The notes: generated from the letters alone by a model not told the origin. A stretch of 64,000 nucleotides of DNA from Fimbriosthenelais zetlandica (GCA_977030845.1 OZ365111.1:7688001-7752000); one strand, 5' to 3'. Numbered from the stretch's first letter, positions 8,695-33,000 are shown. Translations and numbers: made by a program.

Positions 8695-9044
8695 TCAGTT
8701 TGCTGGATCGAGTGGTTCACTGTCACAGCTGTCAGACTTGTTAGGCGTATCGAAACTACTGGAAAACGCAGCTTGTTCTTGTGATGATGGTGGTGGTGGT
8801 TGCGGTGGCTTCACATTGGCTTCGGCTTCTGAACTGTTCAAGGTGATGGCTTCCCTCATTTTGGCCGAGTAGCTCTGAGCTTTAGCTCGCAGCTGGGCGA
8901 TGCTCTCGGACCGGAGCTCTTCCTTGTCGATAGGGGGAGCAGGGGAGTTTGTCTTCTCCCGCTGCGAGTCCTGGCCGTCGGTAGATTTATCATCGTCGTC
9001 CTCGTTCAGTTTATGCGCTGCCTCTAGGGACTTCTTGTGCATAC
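8695..9044 (-). CDS. Vsx: Vsx last coding exon (end of CVC domain [10 protein letters not shown], acidic linker, OAR motif, stop)
   Basis: Acceptor (ct)n...cctacctaaaccccag|GTATGCAC; matches ORF 8695..9042; contains [18 protein letters not shown] (OAR); stop TGA at 8697-8695. Confidence 0.95.
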
Positions 9045-12000
9045 CTGGGGTTTAGGTAGGGAGAAAGAGAGAGAGAGAGAGAAAGTGTGAGATTAGTTTT
9101 CTTTCCTAGTCAGGAGAGTATTATTGAATTTTATGCATGGTAACTGGTCAGACCGCCTAGTCTCGGTCATTCTGAATATATCATGATTCAGCATTATTAT
9201 TAATCTTGACTTTAGGGGCCTATTTCAGCGTAAAAAATCTCATAGACTTTGCATTGCTAATGGTTGTTCTGAAACAGGCCCCAGGGGCATGAGGGTAGTG
9301 TCAGGATCTTAATTGGGGAGGTATTGTAGATTTGTGAACGATTTGATAGTAAGAAATGTACTCATAATAGTGTAGAAAATAATTAATATGTAATTAATTA
9401 TAATTATAATGTAGACATATCTCCATGATAGGTCATATTGACCAAGAGAGGGACCACGGGCCTGTTTCAGAACAACCATTAGCAATGCTAAGTCTATGGG
9501 AATTTTTTTTATGCTGAAACAGGCCCCACGAATCTAAATAAATAAATAAATATTAAATAACTTCAGCTGTAATTTCTGACTGTAACAAACATTGAGCTTA
9601 AGACTTTAATACAGTACATAAAGACTGTGGTCTAGGTTAGAATAGATTTATAAAAGGAAGGATTACATACAGTTTAGACATACTGAAATGATTACATCAA
9701 GCTGACAGATAAAAAGAGGTGACCATAAAATTAGTAGGTAACCATTGACACAGAAGCAATTGAAAAGATATCTTATAAATATAATATAAGTTGTTCAGTT
9801 TCCTAATTGTTCAAATACCAGGGGCTAAAGATATTCTCTCAACGTTTGTGATTCGAGCTATTAGAGATCAAAATGTAGATTATAAGGATGAAAGGCAATT
9901 GCTTTTGTGTCAAGAAATAACATGGAAAAGGCATAAAAATGGTGACTAGTAACATACCTATGGGCACGAATGATAGCATACCATACAAGTTGGCAAGGGA
10001 AGTAGGCGGCTGCAGAACAATGGCTTCAAAATGGCGCATCCAGAGCAAAACGTAGCAATCAAACCTCAAAAAACATGCATCCATGAGAGAAACCTCACTC
10101 TACATGGGTATACATCTGCGCAAGGCACAGAAGGCTTATCTTCTAGCACTGCCAAATTGGGCTATTAGCGCAAGGGTGGCGGGTCTCTTGAATTTAGATG
10201 GGGTAGAGGAATATGATAAAAAGGCATCCCCCAAAATGGGGTAATATAATGTATGTATGGTCTAAATACACATAACACACAGGCTTGGTCTAAAATGACT
10301 CAAAGCTATATCTCCAAAAATCAGGGGATTGAAGTCTCAGAGAAGGAAAATCCAAAAAAGCCTCGAAAAGGAGCAAGATTTGCTGTGGATGTATGTGGGC
10401 AATTTTCCTCTTTTTAAGCTTTTTAAGACTACTTACTAAGTAGCCAGGGAGCGCAGGAATCGAGGATGCCATCTTTGGCTGAAGTGAGGATGGAGTCAGG
10501 GAGAGGAAGGGAATGGCGGACCATGGCGCCATATAAGCCATATTCAGCCATGATGCTTCCGCGGCCCCACGTTTTCTCCGTTTTGCGCCATTTTGCTCGC
10601 CTGTTCTGGAACCAGACCTAAAGCGGAGAGGAGAAAAGGAGAGGAGACGACTAGATGAGCAAGGTTTAGCTTCTGTTTATATTTTAGCCTTGTCACTGAA
10701 AACAGTGGTCATTTAAGTACTTACTGATTAACCAAGGGGCACACGACTCGACTTCTCCATCCTTTGCTGACTTAAGTATGCTTTCTGGCAATGGTAAAGA
10801 GTGTCTAACCATTGCCCCATAGAGACCATACTCAGCCATTATGCTGCTGCGCCCCCATTTCTTCTCTGTCTTACGCCATTTTGCTCTTCGATTTTGGAAC
10901 CAAACCTAAGGAACAAAATTCATTTATTGTGGTTATTTTAAATTAAAAAAATAGTTTTGTTTCTTTGTTATAAAAGGGGCAAACGTTGTATGGTAACAGT
11001 CCGCTAACAGGCACTTTGAACGTTGAGGCGGCGTCCTTGCTTCAAGTCTTTTGGAACCTAAAAGGCAAACCTGAAAGACACTGACACTAATGACAGATAA
11101 CAAAGGGAAGGTGTGTAATGTATTATTTGTTTTGATATGTCTATTACATCCTGCTTAAATTACACTGGAAATGGTGCATCTAGTGGTAAAGAGTAGAGGA
11201 AATTATGAAATTTACCCTCAGCTAATGATGAAGTCATTCATGCAATATTAAGCGAGGCCTCGTATAGAGAACCCGAGGCTGTGACTTGTCTTCTGCTTTA
11301 TATCAGTCCTTGTCTAGTTGATATCGTTAGCGCCGGAAAGACAAACCGATTCGTTACATTTCCTACTCATTAGCTTGAAAATCACCGATGGCCTGTGACA
11401 GCATGAAATATAGGAGGATGGGCAACATCCGCTTAGTGCGCCTTGCAAACGTGTTCAAGCCGCGGGGGCCGCCCGTTGTGCACCACGGGGTGCCAAGACT
11501 GTCCCGCACCAAATCTCGTCATTTTCCCGATTTGAGCATTCAGAGAGGCCCGCTAATGGTTTCGTGTAAACGGTTTCACATTTGTATGATTCTTTTGTCT
11601 CGGGCTTCGTGCTAGCCCCCAAGTACAAGTCCCCAATTTGTAGATTTCCTATAATTAAGTGTGACAGACTTGCTGGTTCAATTAGCCCTGCAGCGAAGAA
11701 ATAATTAGAGCCACAATGTGTAATTAAACGTGGCAGCCTATCGTGCTTTTATTCCTGCTCCTGCTTTGACATGTGCCGGTATTGACCCCGCGTCCTAAGA
11801 CGACAGATCAAATAACACTTTCCTAGGCCAATTGCATGCCGAGCTCTTACAGTGTGCACTTGCAGAGCTGACCTCTGTGGCAAGATACATTGCCTTTTTT
11901 GCTGGTCACCCATTTATTAGATCTAAATGAGCGTCACAAGCAGATGTAACTAGACTTTCTGGATTGGATAATTGCAATTATGAAGAAGTGCAAGCGAATG

Positions 12001-15000
12001 TAGGAATCACAAATTATGTAGTGTATGTGATTTCAGTTAATGAAAACCTCATACAGACCCTTCAACTTAACTTCATCTTAACTTGTGAGGACTTCATCAA
12101 TTATAATTTCCTGAGAGTTGAAAATCAATTCATAATGTGACCTCTGCATAATAGTGAGTTAGCACGCCTCTATGTGGTATAATATATGGCTATTATTGTA
12201 CTGCTAGGAGGCAACAACCCTCCAGAAAGTGAAGTTTTAATGCCTAATATCATGATCCACGCGAGGCAACGCCAAATCTCGTTTCCGTCTCGTGAGTGGC
12301 GAGACTATGCCTCACGTGACCCTGCATCGCCTCCTGATTGGCCGAAATGGTTCTACGTTCCCCTTAATGCCAATTGGTCGTCGATGTGTCCCTGGAGCCT
12401 CATTCGGGCGAGCGCCTCTGCATATGTATAATCAGACATTAGTAGGAAATTTGCTCTTAAAATTCTCACGCTGGTGTGCCCGGGGTGCCAGCTCGCACAA
12501 TCTGGTTTCTGCCTACGTAGAGCGCCAGTGGGATAAGTTGCTAATGTGATCAGCCCCGTCAGATAAGGGAGTTGATGTAATTAACCAGACAAATGAATGA
12601 TGACACATAATAGGCAACAAATTGCCTGCCGCCACCATGCAATTCAATTATTTTGTTTTCCGCAAAATTGTTGATTAAGGAAGGCTTGGGCCACATGAAG
12701 AGAGAAGGGGACGAGGAGTGACTTGACATCAATAATGGTTGATTTATCTAGCCACCCCCCCAGTGACGAGAACGCCACTCTTCGCTGAAATACAGTGTCA
12801 CTATGACTGCTGTCAAAACAGTATTCTCTGTGCAGGGCCAGCGGCAGAGGAAAGAGTCAACCCAATATAAGTCATATTTACAAGCGTCAACATCAGAAAA
12901 GCCTGTCACAGGCCTCATACCCATCCGCTGCAGATCAACTGACTTACTTACAACCCCCTACATGTTATAGTTCCATATATAGGCTACTTGGAACTGTCTT
13001 GAACCAAACCTAAATTTTAAATGTCCTTAAAGTCTAAAACCTTTTAAGAAATAATGTATCGGGTAGGCCTATACACTGTTACATCCACAGAAATGTATCA
13101 AACAATTTTTATAATGTTGCGAATGACATTTTGATTGCAACGTGACAGCTAGGGCACTTAGGAAGAATGTCTATGGAAGAAACAAAGTTGCTTCTTTGGT
13201 AAGATTCTCATTGGAATGGATTCCTATTGATCCATTAACCCACCGGCCTCGTTTTAGAAACCATGTGTCACTAATCAAAAACAATCATGGCACCATGACG
13301 ACACCTCTAAAAGCCAGAGATTAAATACAAATATCCTGCTCTACTCCCCATTATCTTTAATCATTATTCCCCCTCCATACGTGATCTGCATCTGGAAGAA
13401 AACTAAATACAGTCTGAATTTGGTGCCCTTCCTAATCATCGGAAATGGCTCCCGGAAATGATCGTTGGAGTGATACCGAACGTTTCCGACAGGCGGCTCA
13501 TGTTGCGGCCTGCCATCTGGTGTCACATGATCAAAACAATGAGGACACCTAATGGGCTTATCCTGCCCCGATCCGTTATGCTTCACCCGATACGGTGAGA
13601 CTTTCTCCCCCATCACCCGACACTAATTTCACAAGTGTTCATATTCTGAGCATATTTAATTCATGTCTGTGATAGGGGCTCCCTTAGTGCCTCAGCTCGC
13701 GTCGAACAATACAAAGGGACCGGGGTGAGATTTCGATTGCGATAGGTCAAGCCTCCTTGTGCAAGTCAGCGTGACGCTGTTGTATGTGCAGTGAAGGGTG
13801 ACGAGCCAATGTACCCCTGGGCCTGGGCAAGTTATGACCGAACCTCTCTCAATATCATCAATTATAGAAACAATTTGCCACGACCGGGGCGAAAGCAATA
13901 GTGATAAACGCACCGAAAGGCTTGCTCCTCCATGCACTTCACAGCTACGACTCAGCACCAAACTACTTTGTCATTCAGTCGTGCAGTTTCCTGCCGCCTC
14001 GCAATAAAAGCATGGATCATTGATGAGATCCGCTAGTACTCTAACATGGCTAACAAAAGGCTCCAAGTTGGCCTACAGTGTAGTGTTCAGCTCGTCTGGG
14101 TGTTCACCACCCAAATGCCAACCATATGTTGGTGGGTGACTTTACTACCTCCCGCTCAATACAAACTCCATCTCCCCCAGGGCTCAGGCATTAGCTGATG
14201 GGTTTCATCTGGTCAGGCAATATAGAGACAAGTAGCAGGCAATACATTATAGCCATCGCCTAAATTAAGTAATTGGCTCTACCACTATATGCTCCATTAC
14301 TCTCTCTACCATACCCCTAAACTTGCCATATCTAACGATTTCTCTAATCCAGACAATAACCAGCGCAATTAGAGCTAATGCAATCGGTCTCATGGGACTT
14401 TATCCTCTCCATCGGTTTTTGTCATCCGGATGGCAATCAAAAGGAGCTTTTAATTTACCTCCATCCAGGGTCAATGCTTCATTTCCATAGACTACTCACT
14501 CTGACCCACTATTAGAGGCAATGCTTCAATTGAGAGCCATAATGGTCATGACAGGTTGAAGTTCAATTGCTTGTTTGTGGTGAACTGGTAGAAAAACGTT
14601 GGGGCTAATTGGACCATATGGTATGCATGTACTCCGAAGACTGGGGCTTATTTTGTTTGATACTTGAAACCCCATGGGACAGTTACAGGTACAGATAGTA
14701 CTCTCCCATTGTTAGTATATTTTTTGTGGTCCAAATTGAAGTTAGTGTCATCTGAATATGATGGAAGTTTGCAATTATATTGGTCTACACAGGTCTACAC
14801 AGTGTACTATGAAAATGTATACATATGCAGTTCCTGACGTTGCTTGCATCTTCATGAGCCCAGGGGCCTGTTTCAGAACAACCATTAGCAATGCTAAGTC
14901 TATGGGAAATGTTTACGCTGAAACAGGCCCTTGATAAGGTTTCGCATAGGCGTAAACAATCATTTCTTTTCACAGTTAAATTGTATGCATTGTTATATAT

Positions 15001-18000
15001 ATTTAGAACTATGATTGATAATCAAGCCTACATTATATATAAAATATTGCTCAAGGTCCTACATAATATATATATATGTGACCCAGATTTTAGAAGCAAG
15101 CAATGGACAAGTTCAATGTTTATATTTCAGGTTTGGGTGTATGTTAATACCCTGTGTAGGTATAACTCTTTTGTTGATGATTAAGCTGAATTGTTTATTG
15201 ATGGGAGTATAATCCTTGATGAGTAAAACTCCAGCCTTCCATACTAACATCGCATTAAGCTCATATAGTGGAAACGATCCTTCAATCATGAAAGGCGGGC
15301 GAGTGAAATTAATTCAATTTTCACACGAACCGATAAAGAGCTGTTTATGATGCAGGAGATAATAGGCATTGAGAGGTAATTGATATGGTAATTACTTTCT
15401 AATCTGAAGCAAATCCAAGGAGATAGGAGATTAATGTGACAATCTAAGCCAAGAGTACTGTGATCCTATGGTCTATTGACTTGCTACTGGCGCGGAAGAC
15501 TGGGATGGGAGAGGGAAGGGGAAAGGCCTTCGTTCTACTGCAGCACATCAAAGGTGACTATGGCGCCCTGTGGATGGGTAATAGGATGGAGTCTTGGTCA
15601 TAAATCAGCGTTAGCCTGAAGTGTTCTCAAAAGACCCATCATGGCCCACCTGTGGCAAAAACTAATGGGGGTGGAACTGACGGTCTGCCCGAGCTTACCA
15701 AGGCAGGTGTGACCACAGGCTATGTCCAGCCTGGCTGGCCAAACTCAAAGAGAGATGAGCACAGGACAATTGAGCGCGAGCACACGATAATCGCACAGAA
15801 CGTTGGAAGTTGATCCAAGCCATTGGAGGTGTTCACGGTTTAGACAGACCATGAAATCGTGCCGGTTTGATGTCCGCTACCGTTTTTGTCCCGCGATTTC
15901 ACACCACTTTAAATCAGAGGTCATCATTTCTGAATTGTTGCTGAATTGGAGGGGAAAATCCCCCGGTGTCTATGTTTTTTCTGGCAACCAACCGTTTATG
16001 CAGGACCCTAATATGAAGCACTCACCTAATCATAATGCACAAAGAAATGGCGTTAGAACTAAATACAATTTCTATTGTTACGGTTTAGCTCCACAACTGA
16101 CACTGCATGCATCAGGCTGTGAAATCGCTGTTAATTGTATTGCCTTCACGATTGTTTGTTCGCTCTAATATAATCGCTCATCAGTAGGGGTCTTGGCGCG
16201 AGGCAAGATGGAATGAAATTAGTCTGAGCATGGATTCCCACAGCTAGGCTGGTGCTCCACCATTTCACCCTCCATGATCCATAAGACAAGGGAGGTTCTA
16301 TCAACCCCCCGGGGCGACCGAGTGTCAGAACAGTGAAAACCTCTTCAGCCAATAACTCATGTGTCTTATTCCATTAGCTTACTCGGCTGGGTTGGAGCGA
16401 GGCAGGCCTGACGCTGTGGACCACTTAGGGTGTCTTTTTAACTTTGGCGTGCCTTGGCGGGTCCGTTGTTAAATCAAGAGGGACAGGCTGTTTCCTCCAC
16501 TCAATAAATGGCGTGGAAAATGGGTAGGGAACCTTGGCGAGAGGGTGTTGAATATGGAGATAGGGCAGCTATGAAATATAATGGGCGATATAGGCCAGTG
16601 TCATTCATATTGTGCAACACTATTAACATGCTGGTAGGTCTCCCTTTATATGGCACCTCATGCATGCTTCCTCTATTGTATATAATAATATTTTGTAATA
16701 TGGATAGTACTACTGGTACTTCCAAATTTTAACTTAATTCTCACTCATATAATTATGAATGCTTGTGTGAAAGGTGTATTTATTATTTAAGATACATGGG
16801 GAAAGGAAAGAAGTACACTGAATAGAGTGAGCATGCATGCAGGCCAAAATTTTAACTTGAACTTCCTTCTCTCCACAATCATCAACCAGGCATAGCCAGG
16901 TGAAAAAGAATAAATCCTGACGTTCGAGAATTAATTTTGGCACGGTACAAAAATTATCTCTTGACATGACTAAGACCGAAAGGAAAGCAGCGGCAATCCT
17001 TCGTTGGGCTAAAGCTTATTATATCTGATTGCCTCAAACATTTTCAGTGTTCTCGGCAAAAAAGAAAGACAGAGGTATGTTAAAGGAAGGCCACAAATTT
17101 CATGAGCATGTAAGCAGGTTGTTTTATTTCGTCTTAAACTTCCGAGGTTGTTACTTCGTGTTTCCAGCAGCCTAATTTGGCAAGTCCCAAGGTAATTCTT
17201 TCAAGCGCCCATTCTCGTTTGCGGTCGATCCTGGAACTAAGCCGGCGCGGTGGATTCTATGCAAACTGTTTTACTCCCTAATTGGGTATTTTTAATTAGA
17301 CAACTAATTTAAAGATAATGATTTCTTCAACTGACTGGATCGTGCTGGCATAATACGGCTTAATTTGGCAGAAGCTCGTTTGGCCGATCAACAAGGCTCG
17401 ATCATGACATCTCTTTGTTGTAAGAGATAATCTGGCTGACTTTGAGATTGTTGGGAGAAGAGAGCTAATATAATCTTACTTAAATCCCCCAAGTCATCAC
17501 TCCAGTGATAATCCCTCGTGCTATTTTGCTAAACTCCATCCCCAGTCTATAGCTGCTGCGTATTCAGTATTTTCCGGAATATCCCTCTGCATGCACCTGC
17601 AGCAGAGTATACTATTGTGTTATCACTTGGGGAAACTAACTGTAGCCGGGTGGGGTTACAAAGATCGACAGAATAGTAATTGCTACTTGCTTATCCCTTT
17701 TTCCTCCAGCCTGATTAACTAAACAGGCTTCTAATTAAATACAACAGCGAGGACAGTGGCAAACAAATGAGAGCATAAATATTGTGAATTGCTTCGCATA
17801 GTGCCTGCGTTTATGATGCGTACCCTGTACTCTCATGGCTTTGTCGGTCGACCAGTGGAGGTCCAATCTTCCAGTTGCTCTCACAAACAGTAGTGACAAA
17901 TTAGTTGGCAACTATGTGCGCTATTTCTGTTATTAATACCCACGCGGCGGGTGCTGGATGCAGCCCTGGCTTTGTTGGGGGAGATGGGTCCTGAATCAAA

Positions 18001-21000
18001 TGGACAATGTCTCTCTGGGGTGGTCGAACCTCAGTGAGATGGCGAGCTCGCACGAGGCAATATTGTCATTTATGGATAAACCGCCGGGATAGATGAAAGA
18101 TTAATTGGAGTGTGATATAAACCGAAGTAAGATTAGATGGCTGATGGAAACAGGCCACAGCCTCCCTCCAGAGTCCGGTTCCCAACTGGCTTTACTCTTT
18201 ATAATAAAGTCAGGATAATAGCTTTACCCTTTTTCTACTGCCATCCCACTACTAAAGGCAGTCTCCGACATTTATATAAACCCTCGATGTGTGTGTCTAT
18301 AGCCGGGGATAAAGTGGCCCCACTCCCACGGTCCACTCAAATTGGATGCTTTCAATCGAACCACACTGCACAAGAAAGAAGCACGCCAACCGTGCTACAC
18401 GATTAGTTCTAATTGAAAAATTGCCCCAATGCAAAAGCTGACATTTAGCTAACAAATCTATTAATTGGAATCAAATTTGTCGCGTGAGGAGCACAGTCTG
18501 AATGTGGTGTGGGACTGGGGAGGAGGGAGTCCATAGGGCGCAGACGTAAATTGGTAAATATCCCATTCTGCTGCGAATCGCTTTCATTAGGTTGGATCCT
18601 GCGGCCCGGTGCTCAAATAGTCCCTGAGGGAGGCATTCAAAAATTAATACACGGGTAATCGTAACGAGGACAAAATAGTTCGCGGCCCGGGCACGAGGAA
18701 AATTAATTTTCTGGCGTGTATAAACACGTTAGGGTATATTCAGTATTCATATTTTATGAGCGGATCGCGGGGTAGGTATCGCTGTGTGGCGCACTCACCT
18801 CTCCCCAGGGGCAGCACTGGCGACTCTCAACGACCATCAACACCCCCATTATCGCCCTGATTTCTACATTATCGCCCACATTTCCTTAAATTCACCATTC
18901 ACTTGCTTGACCCCGTGACATTTCTCTATTTGACTCTCAGTGACAAATGTCTACTGCGACTGCTCGGGTCTCAGGAGCGGTGCCTGGTGGCCGTATTTCA
19001 TTGCTTCCTTATGCCCTCTTCTGTCCAGAAAGTAACCGGCTACTGATGTACACCAATAGCTGGATGATGTTATCACTTCGTGTCCTGAATCTTCATTCAG
19101 TCCTCACTGTATGTAACAAGCATCGCGTAAACCATCACATTTCTCACATATTTTCTCACATTGCTGCTCGGAGCAGTGACCTCTGGAGTAAGGGGGGGGG
19201 GGGGGGTGTCCCCTGACTATTACCATGGCCATCCAACCAGCTTCTGCTGAAAATCCAGTAGAGGATTTTGATCCAGAGCTTTAGGGCGATCAAGGAGCCA
19301 CAAAGGCAGGTCTAGAGGGCAGGGCAGGTCCCCATTGTGAACCCGGAGTTGAGGCGCTTTGGTATATAGATGGGATCTGAGGCCACTCTCCATCCTCAGA
19401 CTCCAGGGTGGGGGGAGTATAGTGGGAACACTATAGCGCCCCACCAGCAGCCCCCTTCCCTCCCTCTTTACTCACATCACTAACCTGCTTTCACCTTGGA
19501 GACTTCCCCACCATTGTAGCCATAGTTACCAATGGACTCTGGCTCGTGGCTGACCTTCACCTCTCTAGGGAGAAACAGGAGCGATGACCTTGACCCCAAT
19601 ACAAGATGTGAATCAAGGTGACGATCCTAGGCTCAAGGGTCAATGAATTTATTTAATGTCTTCGCTATTCTCTTCAGCCTTGCTGGGATCGAGATGTTAC
19701 ATTATCCATTAGGTATTATGGCTTTTATGTGAATAGGAGGGAAAAAATGCTCCACTCACAATGAAAGATAGATTGGGGTGACGGTGATATCATGGCCATT
19801 GTCAGGCCTACATTGTTGTGGGTAATATTTTAGAAAAACATGCAGGGGAATGCTCAAGTATACATTTCCCATCTCTTTCAAGAGCATTTCTATCTGGTAT
19901 ATTGGCCAGGCTTCGAGAGAATTTGGGTCAGTTGAATAGAACAGTCAATAAGGATCTCTTGCAAGCAGTTAAAGGTTAATATTCTAACTTAACCAATGAC
20001 CTTTAAGCACAATTCAATTATCATTGTCACAGCTTACCTTTCTGAGAATTTATTACAAAACACAACCATAGTTCATATTACGTGCAGTTTTTGAACTTGA
20101 TTCTTCAACCATTTTAAGAGACATTCCGAGATTATCATTATATTTTTACATGCATTTACTTCTATTTATTTCTGTATGAGTATTATGTCAATAATAGGCT
20201 CTCACCTGGATTCTGTCTTCAGGGAGGTCGGTCTTTAGCGATAGGACTTCTCTGGCATAAACATCGGGGTAATGCGCTTCTTTAAAAGCTTTTTCTAATT
20301 CTTCTAATTGGTACGACGTAAACATAGTTCTGCAAGACAAAAACACCACCAAGATTATAAATACAAACCAATTATTAATAGGTCTGGTAAAAAGTCACAG
20401 ATAAAACAGATGCAAAATAAGCACAAGTAAAGCAGAAACTACCAACATGAACACCAAAATGTGATTACTTAAATAGGTGAATACTTTTTTCACATATAAA
20501 AAATTGTTGTAAATATATAAGCACGTGATTATATAAAATAACCTATATGGAATAACCACCAACCAGATGTGAAACTAATGAAGATGTGGTCAAATATTAA
20601 AATTTCACCACTGGGTCTGTCATTTGGTCTTTAGAACCTCCGTGTAGTATTATTAAAGGTCAGAATGTTTTTCTCTCTATTGCCACATTAGTAATGGGAT
20701 GGCAAGCCACACGTCACAGTAGAAAACACACACGATGTGGTCTGGTATAATGCTAATATCATTTTACATTTGCCCTTTTCTAGGTCACTTCTTCTGACAC
20801 GAGATTAGAGCGCGAGATCTGGGTGGCAGTGTTTCCTATATCCAGCAGACTAGCAACATGGCAAGCCTCGACACGGAAGGGCCCTCCGTCTGCCGTGCCA
20901 CACGAAATCAACCTTTATTGGAGAGGTCACGCCTATTGGAACAGCCTAGAACGGTGGGTCAATCTGATCGTCTATACTCTACCCCGCCCCGTCCCTCCCA

Positions 21001-24000
21001 CCCCTTGTGCTCGAGCTGCTCGGTCCAGCTAAATTAATGACCAGGGCAGACCCTATTGCCATCAGTAGAGCCACCCCAAACCTGAACCCTATCCATGCAT
21101 CGTCCAGAAGCAATTTTCCATGACTTTTTCTGAGCCCCCTTCTCGCTGCCACCTTCACTGCAGAAGGCAATGAAATTTTTCTGCCAAGTATTGCCAGTGA
21201 AAAGGCATGGAAATCACATCACATAGTTGGACGGATGGTCCCAGACGAAATTGCCAATAAGCAGAAAGGATATGGCCAATACAATACACGTAGCCGTTAG
21301 CAGGCCCGTTCATTGGTAGCACAAGTATAGGCAGTCGCTTGCAGCCATCTTGCATTGAATTATCCCATATACTCTCGCATGAGAGATAATACCCACTAAT
21401 ATATTATAATGGTAACAATTAGTTCATAAGCAGCCCACTGCCATAATATATTTCGATGGGATTAATTGAAAGCATAATAAGCAAATTGATGGGATCGGAT
21501 GAATAGAGGCAATAACTTGGTATGAGGGGGCCAGGTTCGGTCATATAGTCAATTATGCAGGATGCGGTTGGGCCTTTAGACGGCCACACTATGTCCTATG
21601 GCACACGGATACATTCATAACCAAAGGCCGGTGCACGCCTTGACAGGAGACGACAATCGAAGCGTTCCCGCGCGAATAAATCCCGCGCCACCACGGTGCC
21701 ACTTTTTAGCTCATGCTTCATTCAGCGCCCGCTTTTCCATAGATTCCACTAATTTGATTATGTCAAGCGAGGATGCAAACATACGCAGCGGACACTTCAA
21801 TAAATTTAATCTCTTTCGACATCAATTATGGATCGAAGGAGACAAGAGGGCGGCTATGAAATATTCAGGGCGTACTGGTGGTGATACTGGGGAACGCATT
21901 GTTTGCTTGGGTGGGGTGAGGTTTGGCAGAGGAGCAGCAGCAGCATCAACAACAGATGGACTCATCTCTGCCAGCTACTATCACTGTTGAGTGTTGACAG
22001 CAGTGTATACTGTAGACCTCATATAACCCCCTATTGTCCCATTATTCAGGCCTGGATATATTATTTGATCCATGGTAACACTATACACTATCGGATCTAT
22101 CTAACCTACCTTAGGCAGTCTTTGAAAAAAAGAAAGAAAAAAATCCAACATGATACGTCACAGTCATTATTACTACATATATATTCTTATCTATTTTTTT
22201 TTGTGCGAAATGTGCGATGAACCACAACCCATCACCATTTACAAATTAATAAAAACACCCCAAGTGCATTCAAATAATGTCTATTGAATGTCATTGTGAA
22301 TCATGGGCTGCAACTGCCACGTCATTTTCAAAGCCGACAACAACTGTAGTTTCAATGTCTCTTAATCGACGGATGGTTTAACCCCGGATATTAAAATCAA
22401 ACCAATAAGCCTTTTCCCTGTCAAACAAACCGATCTTTCTGCTCCCCGCAGACACATACTTATCAATTCAAGGAGAATTAGGCCTTATTCCCAAAGTCGT
22501 CTGGGCGAGTTGCCTTACAGAAGACAATACCCCGGACGCCGTAATTAGATCGATCTCATACGGCGATATAATGTAGCTTTCAAAAGAAAAAGAAACCAAT
22601 TAGTTAAATTAGGTAGTCCGATACGCCCTCGGGACTGGGCATTTCTTTTGGCGGTAATCTGCCGATCCCTTTCAGACGTTCGCCTAATTAGATCCGTACT
22701 CGCTGTTAGGGGATCACATGATCAAAGCCATGTGGTTTACACTCGTCATCTGACAGCAAATGGCTTGCCACCCCCAGGGATGGGTGGGGGTGGGGGGGGG
22801 ATGATAGGGGGAGCTGCTTTCACAGCCAACCTCCACAGTCAAAGACCATGCAGGTGTTATTTGATATGTGATCTGTCTGCATTGCTTGTCACCATACTTG
22901 CTTCTCTGGCATGGCCGCCTCCCGATCTAATGCCTCAGCTCTGTATATACAGTGTCAAATTAGCTATTATACCAATCTGCCTTATGGTGCAAGTATTCAA
23001 ACTTTTGAATTGAAAACCAATTTTGCCAGGTTTGTACATTTTGGTATCCTCATTTGAAATTAAGGAATCGATATTTGATTTGACACCAGTCTATTTGAAT
23101 TAGTATAATATTCTATATACGTGTATAAGTGCTTTTAAAAATTTATACCAGGTGTGTTTGTATACAATGGAAATTCCTGGTTAAAATAAATTCCTGGAAA
23201 ATCCAGCCTTAATGCACTGACTCATGCAATGCGACTTACTCAGACTCTCAGTCCACCAAGTGAGTCTGGTGTAGACTGCTCTAAAAACGTTTCATGTTCC
23301 CAATTAAGCCCATAACCTGAGCAAAAACAAGAGTTGAAGGCCTTAGAGAAGGCGCCGACTGCTGAATTGTTTGCTGAGGCCAGAATGCTTTCTTTGCTTT
23401 CCTTTAAGTCTTGCAAAAGCAACGGCTGAACTCTGCACCAGGCTGACACGACTCATTCATGTCCCTCCGTTCAGCACACCAAAGACCCCGACACCAATTA
23501 TAAGCAAGGGAGTAAAAGGTGGTGTGTGCATGCGTGTGTGGGTGAGGAGGGGGGTGCGGTTGAAGTGTGAGGTTTGGAATGGTTGGGGGTGGAACTGATT
23601 TTTACTTCCCCCTCCTCCTTTTTACGCCTTTTCTCCCTTCCCACGTCCCCCATGCCACCCCTTTTCCTTCCGCCCACCATACTCTTCCTTCTGGCCTTTT
23701 CTCGCCCCTGTAAAATCCCCTTTCCGAGCCCTTGTCACTAGTCTCTGCCTTGCTGTAGAAGGGGGAGAGTTCTACAGGGCCTGTCATTGCTTGTCAGGCG
23801 TTAGCTAGCATGCATGGATTCCCCTTGCCTTCCGTAGGAGGAATTATCACCAAGGAGAAAGCAGTCCTCTGTATTCTGCATGGCTACAAAGCCCACATCG
23901 AGAGATAAAGTACACAAATGTATTACTTCTAAAATAAATACAATATACGCCAAAATATTTTAGAAAATGCATTATTTTATGCTATATATTTAGAAGGTCA

Positions 24001-27000
24001 CGCAACAGTACCCTTGAGAATATCCTGCATGACATAAATAGCATAAATAAACTGGAGTGACCACCACATCCTGCAGCAAACTGGGAGGCTGACATTTCTA
24101 AGGGACCACAGTCATGGAAGCTAGGAATTGTAGCTGCTTCACTCTCTGCAAAAGCTTTGCCCAACAGTTGCCTGGGGATTCGAATTTTGTCACGTATGGT
24201 CAGATGTGTATTGAGTCGGAGAGAGACTCAAACTGTGAAGCCGCCGCCTAATTGGGGGCTAATCTTCCCCAGGAGGAGGGCTGCTGGACCGGAGGACTGC
24301 CTCACCCTTCCACAACCGCTAACTAGCAATTGCCCTCTCCAGAAAAGCACCATCGATTGGGCCACTCGGAAAATTGTATGTACCACTCAAGCCATGTAGG
24401 GTACATTTTGGTTTCCTCAACACGTTCCTTGCCATAGCAAACTAATCATTAATGCCATATATCTTAGAACATCTGAGGATATTCTCATAATGCTTTGCCA
24501 TGACATAGGCCTATATATAGTGCAGTTATTCTACCACATGGACCCAAATGAATATAGTCAGACCATACCTAGACCAGAGTTAAAATGGATAATGCAGTAT
24601 TTGAACCGGGAAGGAGGTTTTAAAACCAATGCAGGCTACACATAATGATTAAATTCCCGTTGACAGTATCCAGTTACAAGTGCTGACACACATTTACTAC
24701 TTAACCTTATTTGTTCACTTGACACTTAATTGTGCCATCGATAACGACCCATTTCCATATACTACCCGAGAGCCTACCCGAGTATATTATAGAAGGCTCT
24801 CGGGTAGTATATGGAAATGGGGCGTTATCGATGGCACAATTAAAGTATAACTATTCATTTCCATACTCTACCATACATAGGCATAGTAAGGTCTCTGGTA
24901 GTATATGGAAATGGGTATTTATTGATGGCATGATTAAATATCGACAAATAAAGGCAACTTTCTGATAATGATTGCCAATTTACTCTAAAGAAAATTTGAG
25001 TGTGGAGAAATTGCCCGGGCAATTTGATCATTTTGATTGTTGAAATAGAATATTAAAGTTCCATTCTTAAGCGAAAAAGAGTCTTTGGACGCTTCAAATT
25101 TGCTATTTACATATCTGTGTGCAACTAGCAGCCACAGAGAATGGCGACTAGTTCACTCAATCCTTGGTTAAATTGCATGCGGCGTTGCGAAATCAATTTA
25201 CAGAAATTCAATCGGGCCTCGATTAAGTTAAACTGTAATCTTCATTACACTTGATGAATATGCAAGTACTTGGAAACTAAGTGGATGTATTAATGGAAAT
25301 CAGTGGCAATTGCTGCAAATTAATTACAGCAATCATGCGTGGAATGCAAGGTTTAAATCCTTACCTATGTCTCCGCTTCTTTTTCTTTTTTTTACTGTTG
25401 TTTCCCCGGCCGGGGAATCCATGCTCGTCGTCACCCTCTGAAAGATGATAAAAAGAAAGAGAAAATAGAATTTGTTTCCACTGTAAATACATTGAGCAAT
25501 GATGGCGGGCCTCAGTCTAAATCCCCTTAACATCGATTACCAAGGAGCGTTAGTTGATGTTCAAGTGTTTTCTAATGAGTGCTCTATGATAAAATTGCTA
25601 TAAAAAGAGGAACAGTTGGCAAGCTTCCGGATGGTGGAGTGTCTTACAATTGCTCGCCCGACACGCTGACAGTGCCTATAAAGGAAACCGAATTATGTGC
25701 TGCAGAAATTGCTCATCGCTCGGTGTGAATATTAATTGGTTCATTTGAGGGGCCCAGCAAGCAGCAGTTGGCTGTATAGATGAAGCCAAGCAGAAAAGGA
25801 AACAATCATGGCCATTTGGCACCAACCGGGGCGAGTTAGAGTGGCGGCAAAGTCATTATATTATCGCTCAGATCACGGGGTGGAGAGGAAGTGCCCAGAT
25901 ATGCTTTTATCACTGGCTGAGTGAGTTGATGGCCGATCAAAGAGCCGGAAATGACGTACCAATGGCATCATTTGTGACTACTCCCCTATCCTCTCCGCCT
26001 TTTATTTCTGTGGCAATACCTCACATAACCCTCCAAAATCTCACGTTGTGATTTGGAGCTCTATTTTGCTTGGTAAGCCCAGCCTTTCCTAAACGGAGAT
26101 AAGGACTTATAAATAAGAGGACTTATCACCCCTGGCTTAACCCTGTCCATTAGGTTAGTTATTCCATTACTCTCTACATGATGACCGACTAACGAACCTT
26201 GTATCAACTGATTATCGCTCATCGACCGGGCGTTTATCCGGGTAATCCTCAGAGCTAACATGGCCGACTTGACTCTGACAGAGGGGCAACGGGGAGTGGC
26301 GTGTGCTCAAACACAAGCCAAGGGCTTGAACCACTCTCAAATGTGTTTACATTGTAACAATATTTGAGACCATCAGCAAATTGAAATCCCGCTGTGTGAG
26401 CCATTACGAAAACAACTTGGGCTTAAGACCAGTTTGAGATAATGAGGTGATGTTTATTGGCATGAGAAGAAATCAGTGTAGATTGACGTAAACAAAGCCG
26501 TTTTCTAAGGACTCCCGACTGATCTTAGCCCATCCCCAAGAACTCTTGATCAGACATATTACATTTGTTTTTCTGCGGTTAATTATGGTTCAAAACAGAA
26601 TGCGAATTCATAATTATTGTGTATCCATTCCAAATTTGCTGTCACATGACACTTGTCTATGACTGGTATTCTTATGTATGTGACACTGATATACGATGTT
26701 TGTTTAAGGTCTAACAGAATGGATCCCGGAGTCAACCTAGGCTAGCTAGTATTCATTTTACTACTGTATATAGGTCCTTTAATAAGATATATAGTGGCGA
26801 GTCTTTGCGACTGTAGCCTACTTCTATTACCTCATTATACAATCCTCTCACAGAGACCTCCATTGACCCCAGCAGAATAAACCCCATTGTTAATCCCCAA
26901 TGGAAATTAACCAATCAGCCAATGATAATCAAACATTTGCCTTTCAAGAGGCTTACATGATGAATACCACACGAGTGTGCTCTCGGTCTTATTATGTGGA

Positions 27001-30000
27001 ACAGGCCGCAACAATAAATTAGCAAATCCTCAGCTCTATGGAGGCGGTACTAATTTGACTAATGTGTGGTATGGGATGAGAGGACTTATACCGGACTATT
27101 ATATTAGATAACAGACTGCTGTTGGCTTATCGGCACAGTTCTATGTACATGGAAACCAGTCGGTATTCATAGGCTTTACAGCAGCCTCTTACTTTCACTT
27201 CGATTGGTTAAACACTGAGGGATGACAAGAAGCCCATCTGCACACACAAGAAACGGTGTCGGGTGATCCCTTTGAAAAGCACTTGCTGGTGACTTCGCAT
27301 CGGGTCTCTAGTCATAATATAGTGCCAATCATGTTAATATTGCCCCCTGTTTGCTCTCAAAATACTCGCTTCGTGGCTCCTGTATTTTCTTTGCCACGAC
27401 AGGGGAGATGGGTAGGAGTCAATGAAAATAAGCCGCATGGTCCATGAGCCTCAATCAACGGTTCAAACTTTCATGAGCAGACAGACAGTAGACCTGTATA
27501 TTCCCCGTGCTGGGAGCTTGAATAAATCCTGCGCGGTATCTCTTTCCAGATGATGAATGTGCCCTGAATGCCAGTGTCTTCAGAGTATATGACACATCTC
27601 AATTCTTTCTACATCTCCAGCCTAAATTGATAATTTAATATGATTGATACTAAGTTGTATTTTACTTGTGAATACGCCCTGTTTCGATTGTTGACAGAAC
27701 AGCAACTACTCTATGATGACCCGATTGATTGATATCTAGATAAGATATTTAAGGCACCTGTGTACCAAGTACATCAAAGATTAAGTCTTGCTTGATCATA
27801 AACCATGTGAAGCATACAAGGTATTTATACTATCATAGTCTGAATGTATATGCCGTCTATGTAACCTCTTATAGAACTTGAGACAGCAATCATGACAGTT
27901 AGAACCCTTATATATGCATTGATTCTATGCCTATACAATTACATCAATTATAAATATATTTCAAGTGTCTACCCTGACGACAGTCATATGAAATATTTAT
28001 TGATCAATAATCGTTCTTTAATGCATAAAGGTTTCTTTTCGGTTTATATTTCAATATATAATGATAAGACATTTATCTTTGAAACAGAGACCTTTTTAGC
28101 CCCGCTATGTATATAAATCCCAGCATCAAAATATTATGACATTGCACTCACTGAATTGCCCCACAATTACTACGCATCACAAAGGCAGGGGTAGAAGGCC
28201 CTTGGGAAAGCATTAGCTTTGTGTCAGTATTGCATCTGAGACACGCAGTTTCATTGAAGAGTGTCTCCTACCCAAGCCAGCTGTCAGTGGGTGGGTGTAT
28301 ATATATACATGTCTATGTAGGACCCCCAATGCCCTCCTCCTCCTCCTCCTCCTCCTCCCACTCCCTTTCCTTTTCTATAGCCAAGTACAAATTTGTCACC
28401 TTGACTATCTACCTCGGCCCCCCAGCAATGCGTGTGAAGAACATCACCGCTCAACACCAACATTGTCTCTTTGACTTGCTCGGCCTTTATGTTGGGCCTT
28501 CTACCAACAAAGCACCGTGCAGTAACCCACTTGTCACCGGCCACTTGAGGACCATTGGATGGGCATTAGCTGGCCGTGACATTAGAACACAGGCTGTTAG
28601 CAGCCCACAGGCTTTGCCTTCCCCGGTGCCCATATTGTCTGTGTGCTGTCACCAGTTGGTTGAGTTACGGCGCTCCCAGGTCTTGTTAGCTTGACAATTA
28701 GCGCGACAAATGACCCACTAATATCGGGGTGTATTAAATGCCTTTGATGTGACTCCTCCGCCTTGATGAAAGTTTGATCGCAAGCTGGACGTAGCTTGAT
28801 GGTTTGTGGGAGGGGCAGTCCATCTATTCCTATGTATCATCCCCTCCCCCAAGCCCCCCCAACCCCCAAGAGGATGGAAACCAGACTCTCCCCCACCCCC
28901 TGTACTCTCCTTCCTCCCCTCCCCACTCGGCCATCACTATCGCTACCCAACCCATCAATATTGTAGGGAATTCCACCCATCTTTCCCCCACACTATCAAC
29001 AGCCTTTACTTCGACATATAAATGCCACACACATAACCCAACACTTTGACGATACACACTATGAGCAAACCAGTGCTGATATTACAGGGCTCTCCCGTCC
29101 AGTCCTATTGCTGTCACCTACCCATCTCATCTGTCACGTTGGCAAGGGTGACAAACAGGGAACACCAACCATGACATTTCTCTCCAATTTGGAGAAGAAC
29201 CCCGCTGCTCGGTTCGTGCCAGTTCCCTAGCTTAGACTGCAGCCCCTTTAAAACAGTGCTAAAGGACAATGGGCCATGGTCAGAACACCTGTTATTAATT
29301 TGTAGTTTACGGAAGGCCTTTGTGATGCCATAATTCCCTGAGCCGATAATTGTAGACCTTAAGTACGTGCTTAACTCAAGTGACTCATGTAGCGCCATTA
29401 CAAGTACATGTGTTGGTTAGACAGGAACATATTGTAAAATATGTTCTCTTTGAACTTCACCCCAGTGCACAACATGTTGAGATGGTCACTTCAGATAGCC
29501 ATGCAATCTCCACACAGATGTAATCGCGTTTAATCCGATTTTCCTATTTGGATTTTCCACTGGATTTACTCATGAACATGGAAACCATTTCATAATGTTT
29601 TCCAGTTTCTGGGAGTATACAGTGATTTGTTTCCATAAAGCTTTTTTTTCATATTCAAAACAGCAAAACTCGAAGACAAGAGTTCTTGACATCGAGGTGG
29701 ATTCTAGTTGGTGAAGTAGTGAATCTCTGCCTATTGTGTTGGGATTGGACATTAATGTTAAAAAGACACGGACTCTGCACTGTTCTAATGCCTCTTAGCT
29801 GGGCACTGTTCCAGGATGGAGCGTGTCCGTGCAGCTTATTAGTCCTTTAATGTCTCTCATCTTCACCAATGTGAGCTCTTACATCCGACATGAAGGACCT
29901 GTACTATACCTGGTCCTAACCTTTTTTAACCTAGGTTAGCTCACGTCAGTCTACCTCTTCAGGCAAGCCACCAAAAGGTCAATAAAAGCACCTGACCACA

Positions 30001-33000
30001 AACACCACAAGATCTTTATTAACCACTTTGATATCGGCCCTAATGCCACAACCCTGAACCACCCCACACCCTGCCTCGTCACCCCTACTAGGAGACTTGC
30101 ATTTCACTGAAATTAGCCCATCGACTAGTCATAGTCTCGTATTACCTGGCGCCTTACGAGATTCAGCGAGACTTCAGCGAGTTCTCGTTTTGATTGCACG
30201 ACACCAGAGGGCTTGGTGGTTGGTTGTGGCGGAGCACTCTTCAAAGGTGGTGAATTTATCCTGGCACACTCATTCTGGCCACGGGAAATGTGATCTTGGC
30301 TCATAATTTGATATGACATGTTTGTTCGCATTTTTACAGCTCTTTGTCCTTGTTAACGACCAGGGGCTATCCTCCCGCTTGGGAATGGGTTCCTGTAGCC
30401 ACAGGGCGAATCAATTCAATAAAAGATTTCAAGGGACAGAAGTGAATTTCTAACCCTTAAGATTATGTCTTTAAATAGTCCTTTTGGAAATTGACACGAG
30501 GTAAAGGCTACAGAAAGTGGTATTGTACTATGACAATGCTACCGCATGTAAGCATCTATAGTGAATAGCATTGCTAATGGTTGTTCTGAAACAGGCCCCA
30601 GATGAGTGAATACTGCTATCTCGCTCATAACTGACCTAGGTTTTAAGAATGATCAAATCGGAACTCCAATTCAAATTTCTGCCATCAGTGGTCTAATCTC
30701 TATGCCACATCGCCTTGGCATGGGATGCCACAATATAGGAAGCTGATATTCATTGCGCAGACAGACACATCAAAGCAGACAGTAGTCCCCCAACATGGTG
30801 GATAGCACTAAGAATATCCAGGAAATCCGATAAGCTCTTGCGCCCGGTCATTGATATTCAACCAACATTCTTTGTCCGTATTACATCAAAAAGTTAATTA
30901 CCTGACCAACCAAAGGCACCGGGCGGCCATTTGCATTGAGGAGGCCGCTCTAATTGGGGTAATCAAGCATTAAGCGGACCCGACAGACCTTTACATGCAA
31001 TTACCTCAAATGACATGTAACGGGAGACGGTGCTAAGCACCTTTGATGTGACCACCTATTATAGGTTCGCTTGGTTGCTTCCCGGCGTGTTTATGTGAGA
31101 CAAACTGTCCAGTACCTCCTCCTACCTCCTCCCCCTCCACCTCCTTTATTATACCAGCAAGTTGATGACAGTATTTTAAGACCTTCATTCATTTACTCCA
31201 AGTGGTGTGGGAGACAGGCATGGAGAAAAGGGGACCACCGTGGAGGGGTCTATTGCAAAGGCAATCGCCACCGATGCATCGGGGTCGAGCCGCCAGCAAA
31301 GTAAAGGCAAGCATAATTAGCTAAGGGGATAGATATTATGCTTGGATGGTATGGCGGGGCAGGCGGGCTAGGCTTGCAGTTCTGAGATTATGGTCACAGT
31401 AAGTGCCAATATGGATGCGAGTTTCATTCCCTTTGTGGCCGCTCGCCGGCGCTGTAATTCGCCTATTTGGCCAGAAAACACCCTTCATCTCCTTGGTTCC
31501 CCAGAATAATGTTACAAAATGGAATGAAAATATTATTGAAGCGCGGGGAGCGGCGGGTGCGTTGATTTATTATCACAATATTTTATTAGAGGCCGACATT
31601 GGCGAGTCTTGCCGGGGCTAACTCAGTCACTCGTGGGGCCTTGTCAATCCCCCGACCAATAAGACCGTCAAGGGAGACAATGCATAAGCAACCCGCACGA
31701 AAGATTAAATGTTTCATGGGCACTGGGCACGTTATGCTTGCGGATAAATTATTTCCAATTTTCCAATGATTTTGTTCTAGAGACGAGTGATGAAATGGAA
31801 GGCAGTGACAGGAGTGTGTCGGGGCGGGGCGAGGGGGTGGGAAGAAGGAAGCAGGGTGAGGGCCAGAGATTGTGGGGCGCTGGGAGACGGGCTCCTGACA
31901 TGGCAGGGCCATGGAAGGGTTGCCATGCAAAAAGGCAACCGTTCCAAGATGGGAAAATTATTGGCTTTTCCAGACCCTCGACTGGCGCGGGGGGCTTATG
32001 CATGGATGCTTGCATACAGTGAGAAGGCAGGCAAGCTATAAGCCGATGGGTTTTATAATCATAAATCTTATAATTGATCATCCCCGGTTGGCCATTATTG
32101 CATAATTTTTGAAATAATGCTGGGTATGAATAAATCGTGAGCATATTGTGATCGTATAAAATAATGCGACATAAATGCCTCCTCAGGACATAGTTTGATC
32201 ATGTTTAATCTCTAAAAGGCTTCAAAATGTACTTTATTTCCATCATGGCCGCGGATTCCAGAGGAGGGTTGGACTCATGAATTGCATTCCGAGTGTTCCT
32301 GATGCATTTTAACCCGAGGGAACTGCCCAAACAATACTCGATCACTATGGTAACAAACCTAAGTTGCCAGGTCAACGGGGGTCAAATGGTCAATAAAGGT
32401 GATGTGATTGCTTTGAGGAGAGGAGAGGGACACCAATATTGGGCTGCGTTCACATCAATAGTCACTACCGACTGCTGCGCTGATCCGATTAAACGGGTGC
32501 CAATACAGCCATTGTCGCGCCCGGAATCGGCAGCGTAATTGTCGCGATTTCTGGGCACAATTCCACTAAATGGGCTCCCGCTGAGCTAATATTATTTAGC
32601 CTAAACTTGTTACCATACTAAATGTCTTATTTACATGAGTTGATGAGGTCGAATAGGGCCAGTTCTGTGAGAGGAATTACCATTGTTTTAGCCGGTGATC
32701 CAGGAGATGCTGCACCAATACGGCTCATATAGTCGACAGCAAGTGTATACTACATTAAGGGAAATGGCTCCGTACAATATACCCAGGGATATTCCCAATA
32801 CTCCCAAAATCATCTAAAAGGAGTTCAGAGAGAGATAACATGTCGTTTTCTTTATCCATGGATTCTCATTACATGATTACTCATTAATAATAATCACAAA
32901 TTCCTGTTATGCGTGAAGCAATATGAATTAATTTCTGGGATTCTGATTACTCCATGAGTTCGTACTAAAATTGCCAGCTCTTTGAATTAAGAGAATTCAA

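Follow-up and report, generated by a model that had tools for sequence, protein, structure and literature searches.

Across the animal kingdom, genes of the Vsx/Chx10 class act as core regulators of the identity of eyes and interneurons. We examined a 64,000-nucleotide (nt) stretch of the Fimbriosthenelais zetlandica genome (GCA_977030845.1 OZ365111.1:7688001-7752000; the whole stretch is hereafter called the window) and found a Vsx/Chx10-class gene on its minus strand in which the fourth exon is present as two adjacent copies, an upstream variant (exon 4a) and a downstream variant (exon 4b). The pair very probably represents an ancient annelid tandem exon duplication, both copies of which work as mutually exclusive alternatives that would give two variants of the CVC domain of Vsx. 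This reading is carried by the anatomy of the pair, its conservation among relatives, purifying selection on both copies, the logic of the reading frame, and a single origin, all documented at the level of genomic sequence.

Under this reading, exon 4, which encodes the last part of the recognition helix and the whole CVC domain, would have undergone a tandem duplication in an early annelid, once the Owenia lineage had diverged, and both copies would have been retained as working coding exons since that event. Each messenger RNA (mRNA) would carry exactly one copy, with mRNAs that include both copies or neither being predicted targets of nonsense-mediated decay. The gene would then make two proteins of 405 amino acids that share the same DNA-reading residues, carry eight differences in the CVC domain, and may differ in DNA affinity or in partners.

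Anatomy and identity of the exon pair

Each copy (Table 1) is preceded by AG and followed by GTAAGT, and each encodes 60 residues without a stop, ending in ..APWL(I/L). When the two were compared, 52 of the 60 residues were found to be identical; among the codons, 17 match outright, 35 show synonymous differences, and eight carry replacements. The copies agree at 126 of 181 nt (approximately 70%), and the NG86 method returned a nonsynonymous divergence (dN) of 0.128 together with a synonymous divergence (dS) that was saturated and too large to estimate. The introns flanking 4a and 4b are unrelated in sequence, and for this reason the pair is not an assembly duplicate. The plus strand contained only short chance open reading frames. 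It was also noted that exon 4b exceeds exon 4a in third-position G+C content in each of the six genomes compared (in the window, 0.62 vs 0.45).

We then considered the reading frame. Either copy alone joins exon 3 (phase 0) to exon 5 (phase 1) in frame, and the coding sequence with either copy is 1218 nt. When both copies are included, the frame shifts and a stop is encountered 24 codons into 4b, upstream of the last junction; when neither is included, the frame is lost at once and an early stop follows. Because three does not divide 181, an mRNA would be productive only if it included exactly one copy. A search for homeobox exons across the 64-kb window returned exon 3 as the sole such exon and one Vsx gene only, so the two copies must share exon 3.

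The homeodomain is of the paired-like type with a glutamine at position 50, as in members of the Vsx/Chx10 class. Exon 3 matched positions 5-45 of the Pfam Homeodomain (E 4.5e-11), and positions 46-57 come from the opening 12 residues of 4a and of 4b. The CVC domain, which in this class spans about 50-60 residues and follows directly after the homeodomain, is encoded by both copies, and the invariant arginine of its MVRH motif (human R227, PMC3447932) is kept in 4a and 4b. The best protein matches to the exon 4 copies were named Vsx2/Chx10 proteins with 83-93% identity. An earlier note, made from the sequence of the window, had described two 181-nt exons with these splice sites set 107 nt apart, entered in phase 0 and left in phase 1, with in-frame joining to exons 3 and 5 and with 52 of 60 shared residues spread over 35 synonymous and 17 identical codons; re-reading and recounting reproduced all of these exactly. 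Its identification of the exons as encoding homeodomain helix and CVC domain of Vsx agrees with the Pfam positions and the database matches above.

Distribution of the pair among relatives

Relatives were found through an exhaustive HMMER search with exon 4a, after which the loci were fetched and inspected. The matches were Vsx proteins, and three entries matched twice, one of them being the Capitella model CAPTEDRAFT_227181. An intact pair, with an AG acceptor and a GT donor on each copy, was present in the window and in six other genomes. These comprised Capitella teleta (L001, GCA_000328365.1; exons of 184 nt), a metagenome contig (L002), a Logan assembly (L007, ERR14368248; exon 5 90% identical to that of the window), two ENA assemblies (L008 and L009), and a genome represented by NCBI GCA_013332975.1 and an ENA scaffold (L011/L012; 4a of 181 nt and 4b of 184 nt). 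Both exons were 181 nt long in L002, L007, L008, and L009. The order of the copies was constant in all pairs, with the type reading ..WG(R/K)SS.. upstream and the type reading ..WGRGS.. downstream, and the intron between them ranged from 67 to 176 nt in the five other loci measured (L011/L012 excluded). Stops, frameshifts, and lost splice sites were sought in the orthologous pairs, and none were encountered in the seven genomes.

Genomic contigs of a further relative also held both copies, amid diverged introns. A separate contig of approximately 2.09 kb in the relative's genomic data matched only 38 bases of the window (10870-10907, within helix 3) and had unrelated flanks; it is probably part of a paralogous homeobox gene, for example Vsx B.

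A single exon 4 with the same boundaries was found in Owenia fusiformis, the nemertean Lineus longissimus, and Octopus sinensis. The intron positions, in phase 0 between homeodomain positions 46 and 47 and in phase 1 after ..APWLL, are common to the window, Owenia, Lineus, Octopus, and Capitella. Dimorphilus gyrociliatus (L005:7758-7944) likewise has a single exon 4, which is of the 4b type and fused to exon 5; because this exon runs directly into exon 5, the intron between them has been lost in Dimorphilus. A second homeobox gene was observed approximately 1.5 kb downstream of the Dimorphilus 4b-type exon. In Capitella, the annotated model CAPTEDRAFT_227181 (L001:13963-14448) joins the first 32 residues of 4a straight to the whole of 4b, which is a mis-annotation caused by the exon pair.

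The distribution also bears on whether the pair could be an assembly artefact, or a recent duplication whose likeness has been kept by gene conversion. Tandem near-identical exon copies do arise as artefacts, probably so in L013 (180 of 181 nt identical, in a gap-rich assembly). The window copies, however, are only 70% identical in DNA and lie between unrelated flanks, the pair is found in independent assemblies of several species, and the copy-specific residues are stable across species. Gene conversion would be expected to make the synonymous sites alike, yet they are saturated. We therefore assign this explanation a vanishingly small probability.

The L013 locus itself (L013:25053-30671, NCBI GCA_014220965.1) is an arthropod-like Vsx whose two exon 4 copies lie 5.4 kb apart. 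Two matches within a single protein entry had suggested a parallel arthropod duplication, which was dropped, given the near-identity of the copies and the gaps in the contig (6,639 N). The L013 copies have no relation to the annelid pair and probably reflect either a fault of the assembly or a duplication of very recent date.

Selection acting on both copies

To characterize how each copy has evolved, nucleotide and amino acid changes were counted between the window and four other loci. Exon 4a differed by 17 nt and no residues from L007, 41 nt and 2 residues from L008, 37 nt and 3 residues from L009, and 53 nt and 9 residues from L002. The corresponding values for exon 4b were 13 nt and 1 residue, 37 nt and 7 residues, 34 nt and 5 residues, and 51 nt and 9 residues. 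The changes between species were thus mostly silent. As a neutral null, the observed numbers of transitions and transversions were placed at random in 20,000 replicates per comparison. None of the replicates had as few replacements as observed (0/20,000 in each comparison); random placement gave means of 9-33 replacements and created a stop in 47-91% of replicates. These substitution patterns indicate that both copies are under strong purifying selection at the protein level between species. A sequence that is never translated in this frame could not show such a deficit of replacements. Conversion from a working copy cannot explain the pair, because silent sites are saturated between the copies within every species.

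One alternative is that only one copy is used and that the other is a dead or dying pseudo-exon left intact by chance. It was noted that no transcript in the protein collections shows use of both copies, and that the annotated Owenia and Dimorphilus models use one exon type only (the 4b type in Dimorphilus). These models are uninformative for species with two exons, because the Owenia and Dimorphilus genomes truly hold one. Against a pseudo-exon, both copies have kept an open frame, their AG and GT sites, and their exact length in seven genomes despite saturated synonymous sites, and the neutral simulations, most of which gave stops, never reached so few replacements for either copy. On this evidence a pseudo-exon is highly improbable.

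A further alternative is a dosage device, in which one copy provides the working protein and inclusion of the second mainly yields mRNA targeted for decay, or else a choice between the copies that is leaky. Double inclusion does lead to a premature stop upstream of the last junction. In addition, the 67-176 nt intron has usable branch-point candidates in most species, and splicing of 4a to 4b is not obviously blocked. A poison exon, however, needs no conserved frame-0 protein sequence, and the protein-level purifying selection spans the full length of both copies, copy-specific residues included. We consider a dosage device or leaky choice unlikely.

Origin of the two copies

We sought to establish whether the pairs trace to one duplication or to several. 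In protein trees, the 4b copies of all species and the Dimorphilus exon formed one clade, with support of 93/88 when fragments were included and 88/90 in a cleaner set, and the 4a copies were placed outside this clade with the single-copy outgroups. A sister arrangement of 4a and 4b was rejected by the approximately unbiased (AU) test for the group of the window (p = 0.010) and marginally rejected for Capitella (p = 0.047). A single origin is independently backed by the constant order of the two copy types. The history that explains these comparisons most simply would be a single tandem duplication postdating the divergence of the Owenia lineage, with 4a then lost from the miniaturised genome of Dimorphilus. 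Among named groups the pair is shared with annelids only, and on that ground the animal of the window is most likely a pleistoannelid.

Weighing the exclusive-exon reading

Several observations weigh against an ancient pair of mutually exclusive exons, or temper parts of it. One-or-other use is something that we infer from genome comparison and from the frame. The protein collections, queried with the Capitella model, window exon 5, and P0274, yielded no annelid transcript joining 4a to exon 5 and, besides gene models, no annelid transcript linking either copy to both of its neighbours; the matches were models from other phyla and fragments of genomic open reading frames. A direct, intronless join of a 4b-type exon to exon 5 was seen in one contig only (L010:1-260, in a 903-nt contig of JGI 3300060324), whose first base coincides exactly with the exon 4 boundary. 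Its codon 16 is an in-frame TAA stop, and one tryptophan is changed to arginine, so that a processed pseudogene or a transcript laden with errors would both be possible sources. As to the origin, the tree alignment comprises 60 columns, over which support for the 4b clade is good and not decisive; the 4a copies form no clade of their own; and a 4b clade without Dimorphilus was not rejected by the AU test (p = 0.09). Cell-type-specific use and distinct behaviour of the two proteins would be a further step beyond the genomic comparison.

That both copies function as alternatives, as the earlier note had proposed, nonetheless finds support in the conserved pair, the silent-site evolution, the 4b clade, and the frame rule, with exclusivity itself the more provisional part. 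Its two supporting arguments also held up. The case against an assembly duplicate or recent copy is met by the DNA identity, the unrelated flanks, and the independent assemblies, and the case for long purifying selection on both copies by the random placements and by the pair remaining intact in seven genomes. The dN and dS estimated between the copies, and the nucleotide and residue changes counted against orthologues, pointed the same way.

Differences between the two encoded proteins

The recognition helix is the same in 4a and 4b, and all eight replacements fall after helix 3, in the CVC part. The number of CVC differences between the copies is eight in this species and 8-10 in the relatives compared. 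Two of the differences are stable across species. At residue 20, 4a has serine, as do the outgroups, and 4b has glycine. At residues 50-52, 4a carries acidic or polar side chains (EVE, EVD, VEE, PEE, EMS), and 4b shows a hydrophobic-hydrophobic-acidic pattern (ILD, IMD, VMD, VME), as in the outgroups. Each copy is accordingly derived at one spot and ancestral at the other, since the outgroups match 4a at residue 20 and 4b at residues 50-52.

The CVC domain helps the homeodomain to bind DNA tightly and has also been tied to protein stability and protein partners (PMC3447932). A search of solved structures found none that covers the CVC domain. The functional consequence of the two variants would most likely be a difference in DNA affinity or in partners.

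Candidate mechanisms for the choice of exon

Next, we examined sequence features through which the use of one exon or the other might be enforced. Across six genomes, the pyrimidine fraction in the 40 nt before the exon was 0.65-0.85 for 4b vs 0.55-0.70 for 4a. The group of the window has a long C/U run before 4b, and both donors are near consensus. These features are consistent with 4b acting as the default exon and 4a as the regulated exon, and they are suggestive of a repressor that would occupy the C/U tract whenever 4a is used. A steric block of the alpha-tropomyosin exon 2/3 type, in which the intron between the copies would be too short to be spliced or would have its branch point too near the donor, was also considered. 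The intron spans 67-176 nt, several species have branch-point-like motifs at a distance of 48-69 nt from the donor, and the sole consensus motif of L008 is 11 nt away from it; these distances do not demonstrate such a block.

Exclusivity might alternatively arise from competing RNA base-pairing between a docking site and selector sequences, as in Dscam exon 6, 14-3-3 zeta, and Ate1. In the window, 12 nt of the intron after 4b are perfectly complementary to exon 4b (27 nt at 74%) and lie inside a block conserved in the closest relatives, and a second stretch is complementary to the same spot in both exons. The 12-nt perfect complement was sought in L007, L008, L009, L001, and L002 and was absent in all five, and the block has no detectable conservation beyond the closest relative. 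In L008 and L009, the introns beside the exons are conserved for no more than approximately 13 nt beyond the splice sites, and by our own estimate about 0.1 such 11-mer matches would be expected by chance. Pairing of the Dscam type was dropped as a candidate, the complementarity not being conserved across species, and we regard it as very unlikely.

Gene model and other features of the window

The coordinates of the Vsx gene and of the other features examined are collected in Table 1. The OAR match in exon 5 reached 17.8 bits, under the Pfam cut-off of 20.1 bits.

Table 1. Features of the Vsx locus and its surroundings, in positions of the window.
Feature	Position	Strand	Description
Vsx gene	38474..8695	minus	5 exon positions (1, 2, 3, 4a or 4b, 5)
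Vsx exon 1	37985..38474	minus	490 nt; ATG at 38474; octapeptide-like FAIQELLGL; GTAAGG donor, phase 1
Vsx exon 2	25365..25437	minus	73 nt; encodes homeodomain N-terminal arm
Vsx exon 3	20206..20329	minus	124 nt; homeodomain positions 5-45; ends ...EDRIQ, phase 0
Vsx exon 4a (upstream variant)	10725..10905	minus	181 nt; end of helix 3 and CVC domain; weak A-rich acceptor tract
Intron between 4a and 4b	10618..10724	minus	107 nt; 3' half is a long C/U-rich tract preceding 4b
Vsx exon 4b (downstream variant)	10437..10617	minus	181 nt; end of helix 3 and CVC domain; strong polypyrimidine acceptor
Vsx exon 5	8695..9044	minus	350 nt including stop; starts in phase 1; weak OAR motif
Intronic block after 4b	9927..10085		conserved in closest relatives only; 12-nt complement of exon 4b
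Conserved non-coding block, intron 3	11311..11841		rich in TAATTA / TAATTG motifs; 73-89% identity in L007, L008, L009
Second conserved non-coding block, intron 3	12420..12748		79-86% identity in L007, L008, L009
tRNA gene	42135-42207	+	upstream of Vsx
tRNA gene	42444-42516	+	upstream of Vsx

Two conserved non-coding blocks were observed in intron 3, both on a par with the coding exons in conservation, with an overall identity of 73-89% in L007, L008, and L009. The first is most likely a transcriptional enhancer, and possibly an autoregulatory one; its motif content is what would be expected of an enhancer bound by homeodomain proteins. An Rfam scan returned no match inside the Vsx gene; the only matches were two transfer RNA (tRNA) genes upstream of it, which have equal scores and are 309 nt apart.

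Relation to known systems and significance

Full-text literature searches turned up no account of a Vsx gene with alternative or duplicated exons. In the supplement of Barton-Owen et al. 2018 (PMC6118893), the Capitella model is tagged as a "weird HD half-repeat", and Platynereis 'Vsx B1' and 'Vsx B2' appear on one scaffold under the label 'weirdrepeat'; the words splice, isoform, and alternative are all absent from the main text. The repeat was thus already seen in the 2018 supplement and never explained there, and the Platynereis label hints at an exon pair in that species as well. The earlier note knew of no such report for Vsx; this stands as far as the searched literature goes and is qualified by those unexplained labels. 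It had also framed the locus as a single Vsx gene. One Vsx is indeed what the window contains, but spiralians including Capitella carry Vsx A and Vsx B paralogues (PMC6118893 supplement), which makes the framing doubtful; because annelids have a Vsx B paralogue, the gene of the window is not necessarily the animal's only Vsx.

The pair resembles other mutually exclusive exons that arose through tandem duplication (PMC9013439, PMC9741552, PMC8373072), in that adjacent homologous exons of equal length and phase are both conserved, the isoforms are the same save for one homologous segment, and the duplication is ancient; it differs in that one-or-other use of the Vsx exons is deduced from genome sequence. 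Like other exclusive pairs enforced by the frame, the Vsx exons have a length not divisible by three, and double inclusion or skipping leads to premature stops before the last junction. Decay in Vsx, however, is a prediction from the frame, and acceptor strength or a repressor on the C/U tract is only suggested as the means of choice. The closest annelid parallel to be described is exon 9 of Capitella teleta Meis, which is duplicated in tandem, with the copies used in a mutually exclusive manner (Irimia et al. 2011, PMC3140891). This too is a homeobox factor with a duplicated exon and few residue differences (five in Meis and eight in Vsx), although Meis belongs to the TALE class rather than the paired-like class and is altered in another region, whereas the Vsx pair changes the CVC domain after the homeodomain. 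The likeness to Dscam drawn in the earlier note extends to outcome and not to mechanism. As in Dscam exon 6, 14-3-3 zeta, and Ate1 (PMC6071210, PMC7797038), one exon of a tandem homologous set would be chosen, but conserved complementary intronic elements were lacking in Vsx across the five other genomes checked.

Vertebrate Vsx1 and Vsx2 (Chx10) provide a comparison at the level of genes. They share the same recognition helix, and their biggest difference falls in the same CVC stretch, at residues 44-53 (..(D/E)S.. vs ..SI(I/L)NSAK(S/N)G(L/M)(V/M)GS..). Unlike the annelid pair, for which a choice by splicing within one transcription unit is proposed, they are two genes from gene or genome duplication, with separate regulation. 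A broader proposal is that an exon switch, probably of early Palaeozoic age, gives two factors with the same helix and different CVC domains, deployed in different neuron or photoreceptor types and with different affinity or partners. We put this forward tentatively, at somewhat less than an even chance.

For existing annelid data, the pair means that at least one gene model, Capitella CAPTEDRAFT_227181, is wrong at this point, and that the copies have entered homeobox surveys as odd repeats or as additional genes. In Platynereis and Capitella, expression and single-cell work that regards Vsx as a single product may be pooling two isoforms. The locus offers a natural, long-conserved pair of CVC variants within one gene and with it a ready-made experiment on the domain: if the reading is correct, CVC function would be testable through a natural variant pair differing at eight residues. 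It would also represent a clean case of exon duplication substituting for gene duplication, in which the part that varies also distinguishes Vsx1 from Vsx2 in vertebrates, and annelids would have solved at the level of an exon what vertebrates solved with two genes.

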